Shown one piece after another: positions 22,773 to 63,393 of a DNA stretch of 64,000 nucleotides. Below the pieces are notes generated by a model that saw nothing but the letters and a program-made list of their open reading frames with translations, was not told the DNA's origin and searched no databases. The stretch spans positions 124,001-188,000 of the IMG/VR virus record IMGVR_UViG_3300022839_000006; one strand, 5' to 3'. The first letter of the stretch is position 1, and every line of letters begins with the position of its first letter. The translations under genes were made by a program, and so were the position numbers.

Positions 22773-22823
22773 AATATAATACCTTTGTGTGTGTTAATCA
22801 AATAGGGTGGATGGTGATGGTCT

Positions 22824-23039
22824 TTAAAGACCATCACCATCCACTTCGTGATCCATTTCGCCATCCACTTCGGTGGCTTCAGCTGAGTGGCTCTCTATAA
22901 ACACAACAAACCTCTCGCGTACAGTTCCCACTGCAACTAACTCACTTCCTTTGAACGAGCCACGCTCTGTACAGGCATCAATGATGTTGACCACCATTCC
23001 AAGATCGTTTAGTGTCAGGCTGTTTTGTAGGTCAGTCAT
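22824..23039 (-). CDS. Small conserved T4-like phage protein
   Basis: LTLNDL...IID.C..RG.FKG.EL..VG motif; ATG at 23039 with SD. Confidence 0.6.
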   Translation of the reverse strand: MTDLQNSLTLNDLGMVVNIIDACTERGSFKGSELVAVGTVRERFVVFIESHSAEATEVDGEMDHEVDGDGL

Positions 23040-23706
23040 GTCGTTGCCCCTTTTTATATGTTGATTTTGATTCGATTGCAATGAAGTATGTAACTTTAGA
23101 TGAACAGAATTTTGATATCCCTTTTGAGGACAGTTCAACTTCATAGTCGCCTGAGAGAAGAGGTAGATTCTCCGTTTTAATAATCAGCGAAAAAGTATCA
23201 TCTGTATTGCCCAATTCGAACCCATACGAGTCAGCAGACGGGTTTGCACTGTCAATTGCTTGTAGATAACACTTGCCCTCAGCGCCCACAAACGCAATCT
23301 CAGGCAACTGAAAGACACTCGACGCCTTCAACACCTTTGATAGATCATCTGCAGAAAGTGAAACAGACACGTCAACAGATGGCAGCTTAATTTCTTTCTC
23401 TGGGGGCGAAATTATCATGGACGGATCAGCATAAACATACTTCGCCTTGCTCTTTCCTTCAACGATTGTGATAAAGCTGCTACCAAAGTCAAGATCAGGA
23501 TCTGAATATAGGCTACATACAGACAAGAAGCGTGGAAGGTTGTATATTCCTGCTGTTCGTGGAAACTCGTCAGGAACAGTGGCAATTGCCATGATAGTTT
23601 TTAGCGGACTGATCGTTTTGAGTGTGTTGCCTTCTTTAAGAAGGATGGATTGGTTGATTCCTGCAAAATTCTTTAGTACTGTCATCGTTTCACTTGATAG
23701 CTTCAT
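23032..23706 (-). CDS. gp45: Sliding clamp gp45
   Basis: MKLS.ET..VLKNFA.INQS and IY.L..FL motifs; synteny. Confidence 0.95.
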   Translation of the reverse strand: MKLSSETMTVLKNFAGINQSILLKEGNTLKTISPLKTIMAIATVPDEFPRTAGIYNLPRFLSVCSLYSDPDLDFGSSFITIVEGKSKAKYVYADPSMIISPPEKEIKLPSVDVSVSLSADDLSKVLKASSVFQLPEIAFVGAEGKCYLQAIDSANPSADSYGFELGNTDDTFSLIIKTENLPLLSGDYEVELSSKGISKFCSSKVTYFIAIESKSTYKKGQRHD

Positions 23707-54765: not shown

Positions 54766-55077
54766 TTGATGAATACGTTTAAGGAATATATCGTTGAGTC
54801 AGAAGCACAGCTCAAAGCAGCAGGTGTTTCAAAATACAATGAACCAAAAAGAACACCCTCACATGCAACAAAATCGCACGTGGTTGTCGCCAAAGAGGGT
54901 GGTAAAATTAAACTGATTCGGTTTGGTGAGCAAGGTGCTGAAACTGCTGGTGAGCCCAAAAAAGGCGAATCTGATAGAATGATAGCCAAGCGCAAATCGT
55001 TCAAAGCGCGACACGGTGAAGACATCGCTCGCGGCAAAATGAGTGCAGCATATTGGTCCGACAAAGAAAAGTGGTAA
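54766..55077 (+). CDS. Small basic late protein with capsid-targeting-like N-terminus
   Basis: CATAAATA at 54733; MNTFKEYIVE; K.IRFG.QG, SF.ARH, SA.YW...W. Confidence 0.7.
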   Translation: MMNTFKEYIVESEAQLKAAGVSKYNEPKRTPSHATKSHVVVAKEGGKIKLIRFGEQGAETAGEPKKGESDRMIAKRKSFKARHGEDIARGKMSAAYWSDKEKW

Positions 55078-55158
55078 TTGACAATGACTACCGTTGACTA
55101 AAAAGGTAGTCATTGTATACTACGGATCTGTGTATAACCTACAAATGGAAGATTTATT

Positions 55159-55602
55159 ATGAAAATTGAGTATCGTCGCGGCGATGTGTTAACCACAGAC
55201 ATCGCCCACATTATCCACGGCTGTAATAGTCACGGAGTGATGGGCTCTGGCGTTGCTAAGATGGTCAGATCAAAATATCCCCCAGCATATCAAAGATACG
55301 TAGATGAGTATAACCGTGTCGGTCTTGAACTGGGCACGGTCATCCCTTCTATCCAACGTGACGACAAAGTGATTTACAACGCCATCACGCAGCAAAACTA
55401 CGGCAACAATAAAAATGTAGTGTATGTGTCATATTGGGCCATTGCTGAAGCTTTCAGATACATTGACTCGGCCGTCAACATTAAACAGATTGCGCTGCCG
55501 ATGATTGGTGCAGGATTAGCAAATGGAAATTGGGACGTAATCTCCGCAATTATAGAAAACACCCTGACACGAACATTGCCTGTGGTATACGTCTATGGGT
55601 GA
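55159..55602 (+). CDS. Macrodomain (ADP-ribose processing) protein
   Basis: GDV...I.HGCN..G.MGSGVA and P.IGAGLA.G.W. Confidence 0.9.
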   Translation: MKIEYRRGDVLTTDIAHIIHGCNSHGVMGSGVAKMVRSKYPPAYQRYVDEYNRVGLELGTVIPSIQRDDKVIYNAITQQNYGNNKNVVYVSYWAIAEAFRYIDSAVNIKQIALPMIGAGLANGNWDVISAIIENTLTRTLPVVYVYG

Positions 55603-55824
55603 TTTGTGGTCTTCGTGTCACGTTGAACAAACACTAAAAGGTTGGACGATTTTATATCCTGACAACACAAGCGCTTGGTCTCAATCTTTCAAAACGAGGG
55701 GTTGGGCTACAAGAACGCTTAATTGGCTCAACAAACAGTAGTAATTACGATAGTTGACATTGTGTAATTCCGCATATATAAATAGTCTTACGTGTGCGAA
55801 GTTTTAACAAAGAAAGCAAATCCA

Positions 55825-55992
55825 ATGAAGCAAAAGAAGAAAAAGGGCCTGCCCAAACAAAGAAACGAATTTGTTGTGCAGCTGATTCAAAGAGCAGGAG
55901 CAGGTGCAGGAAGCCATCAGAAGTCGAAAAAGGCTTCGAGACGTAACGATAAAATGAAACTGAACAAGGAATGGTCAATCAAGGTCACTTAA
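55825..55992 (+). CDS. ArfA-like small basic protein
   Basis: 55 aa, K/R-rich, RN..V..L...GAG.H.KSKK..RR; stop codon in the loop of a long hairpin (55966-56020); overlapping TTGACA-N17-TATAAA and TATAAATA promoters. Confidence 0.55.
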   Translation: MKQKKKKGLPKQRNEFVVQLIQRAGAGAGSHQKSKKASRRNDKMKLNKEWSIKVT

Positions 55993-56083
55993 TCACAGTG
56001 TCTTTCATTGACTGTTCCTTTTAATGTTTTATACATTGTAACTGTCAGAACCCCCCAATTACCCCAAACAGGAGGCTTGAACT

Positions 56084-56281
56084 GTGTTTCAGCTTAATAG
56101 ACGCGACCAGAGATTTACTCAGGAAGAACGTGACATGATCGATGCAGCAGTTAAAGCAGGTAATGTAAGCATCGTTGAATTAGGGAGTGTAGGCTATGTT
56201 GATAAGTTTCAACAGAAGAGGGATGATGCACGTAAAGAGCGTGCAAGATTGCGAGCGATTGAAAAGAAGGCTGAAGAGTAA
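56084..56281 (+). CDS. Hypothetical protein
   Basis: AGGAGG SD, GTG start. Confidence 0.55.
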   Translation: MFQLNRRDQRFTQEERDMIDAAVKAGNVSIVELGSVGYVDKFQQKRDDARKERARLRAIEKKAEE

Positions 56282-56283
56282 TC

Positions 56284-58113
56284 ATGACTGAAAAATTTGA
56301 AATACTGACACCACGTCAACATGTAAGGCTAAAAACAGGGATGTGGCTTGGATCGACATCTATTGAGGAGATTGATAGGTTTGTTGTGGGCAAGTGGGAT
56401 AGAGTGTCCTATGTGCCAGCATTGTCAAAAATGATCGACGAGATTGTTGATAATAGCATCGACGAAGCAATCAGAACAGACTTCAAGCATGCCAATAAAA
56501 TAGGGGTCTCCGTTGACGGTGATACTGTCACCATCGTTGATAATGGTAGAGGGATCCCACAGGATGATATCCTAGACGTGTCCACCAACGAAATGATTTC
56601 AAGACCTGTTGCAGCGTGGACAAGAAACAATTCTGGTACGAGCTTTTCAAGTGAAAGAACGTCTATTGGCTCGCACGGACTCGGAGCAGCACTTGTAAAT
56701 TATATGTCAACAAGTTTTGTTGGACACACGTGGCAGAATGGTAAATGCATTGAGGTAAATTGCCTCAATGGTGCTGAAACAATTGAGGCAAAAACCAAGA
56801 AGAAAGAAGGGCATGGCACATCTGTATCCTTTACTCCTGATTTCAGTCTTTTGGAAGTTAGTGGAGTATTAGAGCTTGATACTGTTGCTTTGGTTGAAGA
56901 TAGGTTGACGTCTCTACAATTAGCATTTCCTGAAATTCAGTTCTCGTTCAATGGAAGCAAGATTAAGGTAACTGACCTCAAAAAGTATGCGGCGTTGTTT
57001 ACTCCGCAAGATGCGTCCATCGTCGTTGAAAAGACAGACGACTTGTCGTTCTTCTTTGTAGCGTCTGATGACGGATTTCGTTCAAACAGCTTTGTCAACG
57101 GAGTGAATACACGCCAGGGCGGCGTCTATGTTGATTATATTGTCAACAATGTAATGGACGAACTCGGCGGAATGATTAAAAAGAAATACAAAATTGAAGT
57201 TGCTAAATCTACGCTGAAGAACGGAATTACCTTTGTAATGTTTGCGCGTGGTTTCACAAACCCAAAGTTTGACAGTCAGACCAAAGAGAGGTTGACCAAT
57301 CCACTTGTAGATGTTCGGGAGCATTTTGAGAAATCAGGAGCGAAGCCTTTTCAACATATAGCTAAGAGACTGTTTGCAGCACACGACATTATCGAGCCAA
57401 TCATTGCTGCTCAGATTGCAAAGAAAGAGCAGCAGGATCGACGTGAGGCACTTCAAGCACAGAAGAAACTCAAGAAGGTTAAAGTTGCAAAGCACATCTC
57501 TGCTTCTTCGCCTGACGCGACACTCTTCTTGACTGAAGGCCAATCTGCATCAGGTTTCTGCATCAAAGTTCGCGATCCGAAAATGCACGGAATGTATCCT
57601 TTGCGTGGTAAGGTAATGAACATCTGGGACATGAAGGCCTCAGACGTTTTGAAAAACAAAGAACTTAGTGAACTTGTTGCTGTCCTCGGACTAAACATTA
57701 ACGATCCGAGTAGCGCTCAATTTGCTCACTATAAGAACATTGCGATCCTCGCTGATGCTGATAAAGACGGTGGACACATTGCTGCTCTTCTGGTAACATT
57801 CTTCTACAAGTTTTGGCCAAAACTGTTGGCTGATGGTCGGATCAGAATCACGCGAACACCTATTATGATCTCCACAAAGGGCAAGGAGACGTCATGGTTC
57901 TACACGTATAAGGAAGCTGAGGAATTCAAAAAGGATGTTACTAATGGATATGCACACCGATTCATAAAAGGTCTTGGATCTCTCGAAGAGAGTGAATATT
58001 CTGTGATTCTGAACGACCCAACAATGGATCAGGTTACTGTTGATGATGAAGGACTGTTTGAGGTGATGTTTGGCAATGACTCGAGCCTCCGTAAAAAGTT
58101 CATGTTGACATGA
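56284..58113 (+). CDS. gp39: Type II topoisomerase large subunit (gp39+gp60 in one ORF)
   Basis: EIVDNS.DE, DNGRGIP, TEG.SA, PLRGK, DAD.DG.HI, KGLG. Confidence 0.95.
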   Translation: MTEKFEILTPRQHVRLKTGMWLGSTSIEEIDRFVVGKWDRVSYVPALSKMIDEIVDNSIDEAIRTDFKHANKIGVSVDGDTVTIVDNGRGIPQDDILDVSTNEMISRPVAAWTRNNSGTSFSSERTSIGSHGLGAALVNYMSTSFVGHTWQNGKCIEVNCLNGAETIEAKTKKKEGHGTSVSFTPDFSLLEVSGVLELDTVALVEDRLTSLQLAFPEIQFSFNGSKIKVTDLKKYAALFTPQDASIVVEKTDDLSFFFVASDDGFRSNSFVNGVNTRQGGVYVDYIVNNVMDELGGMIKKKYKIEVAKSTLKNGITFVMFARGFTNPKFDSQTKERLTNPLVDVREHFEKSGAKPFQHIAKRLFAAHDIIEPIIAAQIAKKEQQDRREALQAQKKLKKVKVAKHISASSPDATLFLTEGQSASGFCIKVRDPKMHGMYPLRGKVMNIWDMKASDVLKNKELSELVAVLGLNINDPSSAQFAHYKNIAILADADKDGGHIAALLVTFFYKFWPKLLADGRIRITRTPIMISTKGKETSWFYTYKEAEEFKKDVTNGYAHRFIKGLGSLEESEYSVILNDPTMDQVTVDDEGLFEVMFGNDSSLRKKFMLT

Positions 58114-62616: not shown

Positions 62617-62827
62617 TATAAATAAGCTTATAATTCCATTAGAGAGAAGAAAATGAACATTCTACGAACATCGACATCACTGCAGTATGGGAGACCGAAT
62701 AGTATCAATTCAGGTCGCATTCCATCCGTGAGTAATATAGCGAAGGCTGATTTAGAATAATAGAGTTTTTTATAAACATTTTTATTCTAAATCAGCCCTG
62801 ATATTGTTATCAGGGTTTTTTTGTTTT
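62617..62827 (+). promoter_or_regulatory. Leader-peptide transcription attenuator
   Basis: TATAAATA promoter; 35-codon uORF 62653-62760; 16-bp antiterminator 62745-62760/62782-62797 overlapping terminator CCCTGATA-TTGT-TATCAGGG-T7. Confidence 0.7.
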
Positions 62828-62931
62828 AACGGTTGATGAAAAGGATCGTTGAGTATACTATGAACACTACGGACATCCAAAAAAAGAAGTTTGAAACAAC
62901 ACTACGACTTGGTATTTTTTAGAAATACCAA

Positions 62932-62943
62932 CGCTCTTTAAAT
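62932..62943 (+). promoter_or_regulatory. boxA-like antitermination motif
   Basis: CGCTCTTTAAAT (cf. rrn boxA TGCTCTTTAACA), preceded by a hairpin and promoter TTGATG-N17-TACTAT (62833-62861). Confidence 0.55.
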
Positions 62944-62944
62944 C

Positions 62945-63225
62945 TAACTGTATCCTATGATCTTAGAGAATTTTCTCGATGATAGATTGAAAGCAAAGTT
63001 TTTGAATATACACTGTTCAAAAACTTTGCGTGAGGCAATAATTGGTGCACTGCTCTTCAGATTGTGTGGTGGTTGTTGCCTTCTGCTTTCACCTACATTG
63101 TCTCTAATCAACAAACAACGTAACTGAAAACAGAAGAACTCGTGGTACTGCATACTGCAGCTAAGTCGCCACACTTGTGGTCGAGCCTACCCCGTTGGTA
63201 GACAGTCTCTTTGGCTGTATACGAA
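62945..63225 (+). ncRNA. Putative structured non-coding RNA
   Basis: No + strand ORF in the track; stems 62993-63006/63016-63029 (14 bp), 63033-63042/63072-63081, 62988-62995/63084-63091. Confidence 0.45.
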
Positions 63226-63226
63226 T

Positions 63227-63307
63227 AGCATGACGCCAGATGTAGCTACCTGGAAGTGGACTATATAGTCAGTGACAATTAAACACGTTCGATTCGTGGT
63301 CATGCTC
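63227..63307 (+). ncRNA. tRNA-like RNA / degenerate tRNA
   Basis: Acceptor AGCATGAC/GTCATGCT, T-arm CACG-TTCGATT-CGTG, D-like stem CCAG/CTGG; anticodon arm irregular; no encoded CCA. Confidence 0.5.
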
Positions 63308-63393
63308 ACTTATTTCCTGACGCTTAGCGTTGACGTGCTAGGCGTCATAGTGTAAAAAGATGTAGCAATCAAAAAAGGTAAAGGAACTAGACA

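Follow-up and report, generated by a model that had tools for sequence, protein, structure and literature searches.

Only two protein families, ArfA and BrfA, are known to be made from deliberately stop-less messages, and both are bacterial backup ribosome-rescue factors. ArfA (alternative ribosome-rescue factor A, PF03889; E. coli yhdL) is a small basic protein that recruits RF2 to non-stop ribosomes. The 3' part of its ORF forms a hairpin of about 21 bp, and cleavage or termination there leaves a message without a stop, such that the protein is made only when tmRNA is limiting. BrfA of Bacillus subtilis, a small, two-helix basic protein, depends on a release factor and reaches the same outcome through a rho-independent terminator inside its coding region, as shown experimentally (PMC6881298). 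ArfT of Francisella tularensis, a small basic factor unrelated in sequence to ArfA, shows that such factors have arisen repeatedly, although it is reported not to be regulated through a truncated message (PMC6299226). The authors of the BrfA and ArfT papers predicted that more of these factors are yet to be discovered. ArfA, BrfA, ArfB and SmpB all use basic tails or helices in the empty mRNA channel. Two further arrangements are relevant. RNase III processing hairpins of phage early transcripts (T7 R1.1 type) lie between genes and, when cut once on the 3' side, leave the upstream stop intact. In mitochondria, excision of a tRNA defines the 3' end of the upstream coding RNA and removes or truncates its stop, which is then completed by polyadenylation; no such repair is known in bacteria.

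The DNA analysed here is a 64-kb window (64,000 nucleotides) from a large T4-like phage known only from salt-lake metagenomes. The first-pass annotation had described a short, very basic ORF in this window, driven by overlapping early and late promoters and ending with its UAA in the loop of an RNase III-type hairpin, and had proposed it as an ArfA-like, phage-encoded backup rescue factor that senses host trans-translation capacity. The observation itself was confirmed. Its interpretation was supported only in part, since the resemblance to ArfA is not real whereas the idea of a message that loses its stop codon gained strong comparative support from relatives.

A self-contained unit ending in a hairpin

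The unit lies between a macro-domain gene (55159-55602) and a 65-codon ORF that precedes the gp39 topoisomerase subunit gene (56284-58113). The gp39 product is about 47% identical to those of KVP40-like vibriophages, a megablast search of 55000-57000 against cultured phages found no match, and the same locus occurs on JGI contigs of 208 and 264 kb. All features of the unit are on the + strand:

55754-55759 (+), -35-like hexamer TTGACA of the gene's own promoter-like site
55777-55784 (+), TATAAATA, the T4-type late-promoter consensus, overlapping a -10-like TATAAA placed 17 nt after the -35
55825-55992 (+), ORF of 55 codons plus UAA; residues 1-50 are the conserved domain (a basic N-terminus, an R-N motif, a short helix, a Gly-rich loop with His31, and a long basic helix ending K-E-W) and residues 51-55 are encoded by the hairpin arm
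55966-56020 (+), hairpin of 22 bp with arms at 55966-55989 and 55997-56020 and loop at 55990-55996, the 5' arm starting at the K48-E49-W50 codons
55990-55992 (+), stop codon UAA, the first three bases of the loop
55954-56032 (+), extended structure in which an outer 7-bp helix (55954-55960 with 56026-56032) surrounds the main hairpin
56021-56034 (+), U-rich stretch directly after the hairpin (UU AAUG UUUU AU, preceded by the UU that closes the stem), a possible weak intrinsic-terminator tail
56008-56037 (+), promoter-like site (TTGACT, 18 nt, TACATT) for the next transcription unit, overlapping the 3' arm of the hairpin

The ORF runs from ATG 55825 to TAA 55990-55992 and encodes 55 residues, 13 of them Lys, in agreement with the protein sequence first given for it. 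A GTG-extended reading of 66 residues from 55792 exists, but family alignments support the ATG start. The hairpin has two 24-nt arms, a 7-nt loop (UAAUCAC) and 22 pairs (14+4+4) separated by two 1x1 mismatches; the earlier figure of more than 20 bp is therefore right, although only one of the two mismatches had been noted. Since the stop lies 3' of the whole 5' arm, a cut in that arm would leave a stop-less message. Folding of 55950-56040 gives -29.6 kcal/mol against -13.7 +/- 2.7 for 200 shuffles (z = -5.96, with 0 of 200 shuffles as good), and the outer helix appears in both the minimum-free-energy and the centroid folds. The hairpin is among the three longest simple hairpins on the + strand of the window. 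Elsewhere in the window, three ORFs that abut long hairpins stop before the stem or at its base. An Rfam search returned nothing in the region or in the whole window.

The promoter motifs claimed for the gene are real, though their function was not tested. Both boxes are kept in L015, a 98%-identical relative (the L numbers denote loci of homologues examined as DNA), while the spacer differs. Similar TTGACA boxes lie 35-60 nt upstream of homologues in L019, L023, L044, L051, L066 and L067, and L016 also has TATAAATA upstream. Within the window TATAAATA occurs 8 times against 2.6 expected. The -10 lacks the invariant final T, its last base being A, and for this reason a sigma-70 scan did not list the site. 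A TTGACA box directly after the hairpin recurs in L016, L041, L049 and L067. Whether the window hairpin could itself be an intrinsic terminator is left undecided by what was observed: a terminator scan did not call it, the stem is 22 bp and A+U-rich rather than short and G+C-rich, and only about four U's follow it directly. In any event the UAA precedes the U-rich tail, so termination there would keep the stop, in contrast to the internal terminator of brfA.

An undescribed protein family without detectable similarity to ArfA

The similarity to ArfA had been judged by eye, and the profile searches against ArfA, ArfT and BrfA that were suggested in advance as its test came out against it. Pfam and NCBIfam gave no hit for the protein at E <= 10, and PF03889 and NCBIfam gave none at E <= 1 for any of 95 relatives; PHROGs gave no ArfA hit. 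BLASTP against E. coli ArfA, taken from MG1655, gave E = 0.36 on an irrelevant segment. An hhalign comparison of the 95-member family alignment with an ArfA alignment gave a probability of 0.15%, and the family HMM does not hit E. coli ArfA even with filters off. The KGKGS motif of ArfA's basic C-terminal tail is absent; in its place the protein has a Gly-rich loop (G-A-G-A-G-S-H) followed by a basic helix, which does not align to ArfA, and occupancy of the mRNA channel was not examined. No ArfT-like or KGG-type family appears among the Pfam or NCBIfam hits of the 95 members. For BrfA, a profile search of all PDB chain sequences, which should include the published BrfA-ribosome complex (PMC6881298), was empty at E <= 10. 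AlphaFold2 predicts a short helix (15-23), a Gly-rich loop and a long basic helix (35-54) at a mean pLDDT of 83, a layout that differs from that of ArfA; Foldseek on this model found no match in the PDB. The empty PDB sequence-profile and Foldseek searches are uninformative for a 55-residue helical peptide.

The protein does belong to a family of its own, one of small basic proteins of about 45-55 functional residues built as helix, Gly-rich loop and long basic helix. While a word-indexed search found only one relative, an exhaustive HMM search seeded from this protein found 95 clusters at E <= 1e-3 among 1.8 billion representative proteins, with lengths of 39-99 residues plus one 261-residue fusion. 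Two long cluster members (RecJ-like and MurG-like) are clustering artefacts and were ignored. The window ORF scores 83 bits against the family HMM, the match covering the R-N motif, the short helix, the G-x-G-x-H loop and the K-S-K-K-A-x-R-R basic helix. After a basic N-terminus the consensus reads P-K-x-R-N, a hydrophobic short helix, R-x-G-x-G-x-H, then K-S-x-K-A-x-R-R-x-x-K-x-x-L-x-K-(D/E)-(W/Y), followed by a tail of variable length and sequence. Near-invariant residues are R13, N14, G29, H31, K33, K36 and R39, and amino-acid conservation holds family-wide at 35-60% identity. All named members are annotated as hypothetical proteins, and no paper was found that describes this family or any phage-borne analogue.

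The family is carried mainly by phages. Contexts are mostly phage-like, and a few are bacterial or mobile-element-like, including one in Caballeronia peredens; a scan of GTDB found only this Caballeronia copy. A tblastn search with several members against cultured phages found only a gene of Synechococcus phage BUCT-ZZ01 and a motif inside a 590-residue protein of Sinorhizobium phage Phosso, which has no Pfam domain and gave no functional clue. Neighbours in ESM-Atlas are viral hypothetical proteins, and one bacterial cluster carries Pfam DUF7230 (PF23876, unknown function) in 18% of its members. Two of the 95 members hit DUF7230 weakly (best E = 9e-4), but the window protein and the other 93 do not, and DUF7230 is probably a partly overlapping or related set of small proteins. 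Protein-level selection on the ORF is evident. Among 15 unique DNA versions of one subgroup, variable columns fall 8, 8 and 25 by codon position, synonymous codon differences outnumber non-synonymous ones 916 to 443, and the invariant Arg uses AGA, CGA, CGT and CGC.

RNA elements at the 3' ends of the family ORFs

DNA was collected for 46 unique family loci in the first sets and for further loci later, and the 3' end of each ORF was inspected. Most of the 95 clusters were not examined at the DNA level, and an attempt to classify them from their protein tails alone was uninformative. Where DNA was seen, the ORF end is almost always embedded in one of three RNA elements that begin 17-22 codons after the conserved His, a distance that holds in all three classes (17 codons after His31 in the window).

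In the tRNA class, comprising 23 of the 46 unique loci, the last 9-23 nt of the ORF, including the stop, lie inside a tRNA-Lys(UUU) gene, in three different reading frames. Four further metagenome loci show the same. The overlap is specific, since 24 of 30 unique tRNA-Lys(UUU) genes but only 19 of 291 other tRNAs in the same DNA have an ORF of at least 40 residues running into them (80% against 6.5%). The tRNA 5' end must be cut by RNase P for the tRNA to function, and the upstream RNA then has no stop. The window copy is not next to any tRNA; the phage's complete contig (208-264 kb) was not checked for tRNA-Lys. The cultured example, CDS UTS52149.1 of phage BUCT-ZZ01 (ON615601.1), belongs here: it is 48 residues long, scores 38.6 bits against the family HMM, and has its last 21 nt inside tRNA-Lys(UUU).

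In the hairpin class, to which the window belongs, 14 of the 23 unique loci without a tRNA overlap have a simple hairpin of at least 15 bp spanning the stop, against 13 of 586 control ORF stops (2%) in the same DNA (Fisher p = 1.4e-15). This result rests on a strict single-hairpin metric, as a count of enclosing base pairs did not discriminate; two more loci have hairpins that the simple finder missed. Among 17 clear hairpin loci, the stop is in the loop in 6 (including the window), at the loop edge in 1, in the 3' arm in 6 and downstream of the hairpin in 4. It lies in the 5' arm only in L018, a frameshifted copy, and in L022, whose 14-bp hairpin is below the 15-bp cut. The hairpins are homologous and covary: in an alignment of 15 loci, which were selected for having a hairpin, 97.8% of cells are paired against 75% after shuffling and 40-52% after sliding, 12 of 15 pairs show changes on both sides, and 0 of 500 shuffles reach the observed values. 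Most of these hairpins lack a U tract and in this respect do not look like ordinary terminators. No consistent loop motif was found across relatives when mimicry of the tRNA-Lys anticodon loop was considered. Three loci carry the hairpin and tRNA-Lys in tandem, with the ORF reading through both.

In the terminator class, four members (L008, L077, L087 and L088) have a canonical intrinsic terminator that starts at the conserved D-W codons (GGACUGG, a loop, CCAGUC, then 6-8 U) and lies 30-100 nt before the annotated stop. The conserved S-F-F in their tails is simply the translated U tract. This is the arrangement shown for brfA (PMC6881298). A minority of family members (L054, L057, L068 and L070) have an ordinary stop right after the domain with no clear element, and three members in bacterial-looking contexts (L071, L073 and L075) could not be assigned clearly.

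A possible analogue of ArfA and BrfA

The analysis itself demonstrates a conserved protein, a conserved RNA element at a fixed position, and stop codons placed beyond the point where the RNA is expected to be cut or to end. The remainder of the model is inference. In this view the element truncates the message, with RNase III cutting the hairpin, RNase P cutting at the tRNA 5' end, or termination acting at the internal terminator, and ribosomes run to the 3' end without meeting a stop. While tmRNA-SmpB is available the product would be tagged and degraded, and when trans-translation is saturated it would accumulate, which is the regulatory logic of arfA and brfA. By analogy alone, the protein may bind stalled ribosomes with its long basic helix in the vacant mRNA channel and promote their release, which would keep ribosomes available during infection. 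The best reading, held tentatively at a probability of about 0.45, is a functional analogue of ArfA and BrfA that is unrelated to them in sequence. The narrower claim that the stop-less design is functional is considered more likely than not. The evidence is at the sequence level only: searches for sequencing runs found only DNA runs from salt-lake metagenomes, there are no transcript-end, tagging or ribosome-binding data for any member, and RNase III cleavage in vivo, RF2 recruitment and synthetic lethality with ssrA were not measured. A hairpin with 1x1 mismatches can be cut by RNase III on one arm only, as in T7 R1.1-type sites, or the window hairpin could act as a weak terminator given the U's that follow it, and in both cases the loop UAA would stay in the message.

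Set beside the described systems, the window gene shares with arfA a small basic product, a 3' hairpin of similar size (22 against about 21 bp) placed so that expected cleavage or termination would remove the stop, and a poorly conserved tail encoded by the hairpin arm. It differs in that the stop is in the hairpin loop rather than downstream of the hairpin, in its carriage by phages, and in relatives that use a tRNA gene in place of the hairpin. The brfA arrangement is found in the four terminator-class relatives and not in the window. Like the T7 R1.1 type sites and 3' stabiliser hairpins, the window stem is about 20 bp with small internal mismatches, located at the end of a short early transcription unit and followed by a new promoter-like site, but here the ORF penetrates the stem. 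The tRNA-linked relatives recall the tRNA punctuation of mitochondrial transcripts, except that without stop repair the product would be a true non-stop message.

Several alternatives were weighed against this reading. It is possible, though unlikely, that the stop-less design is real but the protein is not a rescue factor. It could be any effector that the phage wants made only when trans-translation is saturated or disabled, such as a modulator or inhibitor of tmRNA-SmpB or a ribosome- or tRNA-binding factor linked to tRNA-Lys (for instance in the context of host nucleases that cut tRNA-Lys), or an abundant non-stop message could itself titrate tmRNA. The same architectural evidence applies, no known rescue factor is similar, and the specific linkage to tRNA-Lys(UUU), which a pure rescue model does not explain, suggests a function connected with that tRNA. 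On the other hand, the only proteins known to be made from programmed non-stop messages are ArfA and BrfA, the size, charge and predicted long basic helix fit mRNA-channel binders, the window copy is not beside a tRNA, and a pure RNA sponge would not need the observed protein-level conservation. Also unlikely, though slightly less so, is an ordinary small basic phage protein, for example a nucleic-acid-binding protein, translated from a normal message, with the hairpin serving as a 3' stabiliser, an RNase III site cut only on its 3' side, or a weak terminator of a one-gene transcription unit into which the ORF runs because phage genomes are compact. The promoter-like sites flanking the unit here and in several relatives, the U's after the hairpin in the window, L016 and L067, the members with a plain stop, and the other long hairpins in this phage are in keeping with it. 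Compaction does not, however, explain the constant codon distance, the rarity of stops that precede the loop, the low control rates for hairpins and other tRNAs, or terminators sitting 30-100 nt upstream of the stop in a whole subgroup. Moreover, RNase P maturation of a functional tRNA-Lys necessarily separates the stop from the ORF, yet no lineage has acquired an upstream stop.

Two other possibilities are very unlikely. A divergent true homologue of ArfA would fit the similar size, the Gly-rich segment followed by a basic tail and the hairpin length, but is effectively refuted at the sequence level by the searches above. A fortuitous ORF over an RNA leader or promoter region of tRNA arrays might be suspected because the ORFs are short and often sit next to such arrays, where spurious ORFs are commonly called, yet this is contradicted by the dominance of third-position variation, the roughly 2 to 1 excess of synonymous changes, the four Arg codons, the family-wide conservation and the absence of an Rfam match. 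A more speculative extension of the main reading, also unlikely but not excluded, is a phage-borne, sequence-novel class of rescue factor gated by trans-translation in which, in many phages, RNase P maturation of a co-transcribed tRNA-Lys(UUU) creates the non-stop message. Fresh tRNA-Lys and a rescue factor would then be delivered as one unit, possibly as a countermeasure to host nucleases that cut tRNA-Lys and stall ribosomes; co-occurrence with host defence systems that target tRNA-Lys was not tested.

Small basic factors made from programmed non-stop messages are already known; what would be new here is the viral carriage and the use of a tRNA gene as the stop-removing device. The signature of a small basic ORF whose end is buried in a hairpin, tRNA or terminator at a fixed distance offers a purely sequence-based way to find further trans-translation-gated genes, and the member in phage BUCT-ZZ01, which infects the tractable S. 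elongatus PCC 7942, makes the idea directly testable. If the reading is correct, this family would be the first such factor carried by viruses, would add a third way of removing the stop, namely a tRNA gene processed by RNase P, and would link phage tRNA arrays to ribosome quality control.

The 3' ends of the family ORFs

The conserved (D/E)-(W/Y) pair at the end of the domain (window 55969-55974 and the equivalent codons in relatives) coincides with the first bases of the RNA element in all three classes, that is, the hairpin, tRNA and terminator classes. In the terminator class, GAC UGG forms the 5' side of the terminator stem. In the tRNA class, the GG of UGG is tRNA positions 1-2; therefore, in that class the Trp would not even be translated after RNase P cutting. 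Whether this residue is conserved for the protein or for the RNA is unclear. The tRNA fused to the ORF is almost always tRNA-Lys(UUU) and is usually the first gene of a phage tRNA array, as seen in the family loci L021, L023-L040, L047, L053, L055-L058, L064-L066, L078, L080-L082 and L084. While the reason for this specificity is unexplained, a link to host nucleases that cut tRNA-Lys could be imagined, though this is only a guess. The proteins of the family are themselves about 20-25% Lys.

The family domain, or part of it, is also found within longer proteins. In the jumbo phage Phosso of Sinorhizobium (PV764938.1; locus L085:841-1080), the N-terminal half of the family motif (L-P-K-Q-R-N-P-F ... 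G-G-G-A-H) occurs in the middle of a 590-aa hypothetical protein, CDS XYS97611.1, which scores 28.7 bits against the family HMM and has no Pfam domains. In a second protein of 261 aa (P0036), the domain is followed by a long acidic extension.

Other inverted repeats and hairpins in the window

Three further regions of the window contain long inverted repeats or hairpins:
22807-22844: a perfect palindrome of 19+19 nt with no loop
55074-55123: an inverted repeat with 22-nt arms (82% complementary)
62740-63360: a cluster of five or six long hairpins (17-25 pairs, on both strands)

The palindrome has a folding energy of about -31 to -34 kcal/mol, and its centre, TTTAAA, supplies the TAA stop of a 106-aa ORF on the minus strand (23144..22824). 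Aside from the gene studied, this is the only ORF in the window whose stop sits at the centre of a long inverted repeat. The 22-nt-arm repeat lies between a 103-aa ORF and the macro-domain gene and overlaps a promoter-like TTGACT-16-TATACT site. The stop of the 103-aa ORF (55075-55077) is at the base of the stem, and the repeat serves as a contrast case in which the stop precedes the stem. Turning to the hairpin cluster, it lies in a stretch with no ORF ends nearby, together with a TATAAATA at 62617 and a good terminator at 62794-62817. No Rfam match was found for this region, which may be a regulatory or non-coding RNA region.

Genes neighboring the hairpin locus

The gene studied is flanked by two ORFs:
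55159-55602 (+): a 147-aa macro domain, encoded just upstream
56084-56281 (+): a 65-codon ORF, immediately before gp39

The 65-codon ORF has a GTG start and a strong AGGAGG ribosome-binding site, and it abuts the start of gp39 (stop at 56279-56281, gp39 ATG at 56284). It has no family match, and one metagenome annotation called only a 48-aa version. Further upstream, an insertion polymorphism was observed about 1.4 kb from the gene studied when two metagenome versions of the same phage locus were compared. In one version, from JGI sample 3300037321, a TnpB/IS605 OrfB gene (L001:315-1562 (-); 415 aa, Cas12f-like) sits where the other version (L002), which has the same arrangement as the window, has ordinary small phage genes.

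The macro domain is most similar to the N-terminal ADP-ribosyl glycohydrolase part of antitoxin DarG (NCBIfam E = 1.3e-15; Pfam Macro E = 4.6e-9; PHROG 335). For the phage, it is a candidate counter-defence enzyme against ADP-ribosylating host systems.
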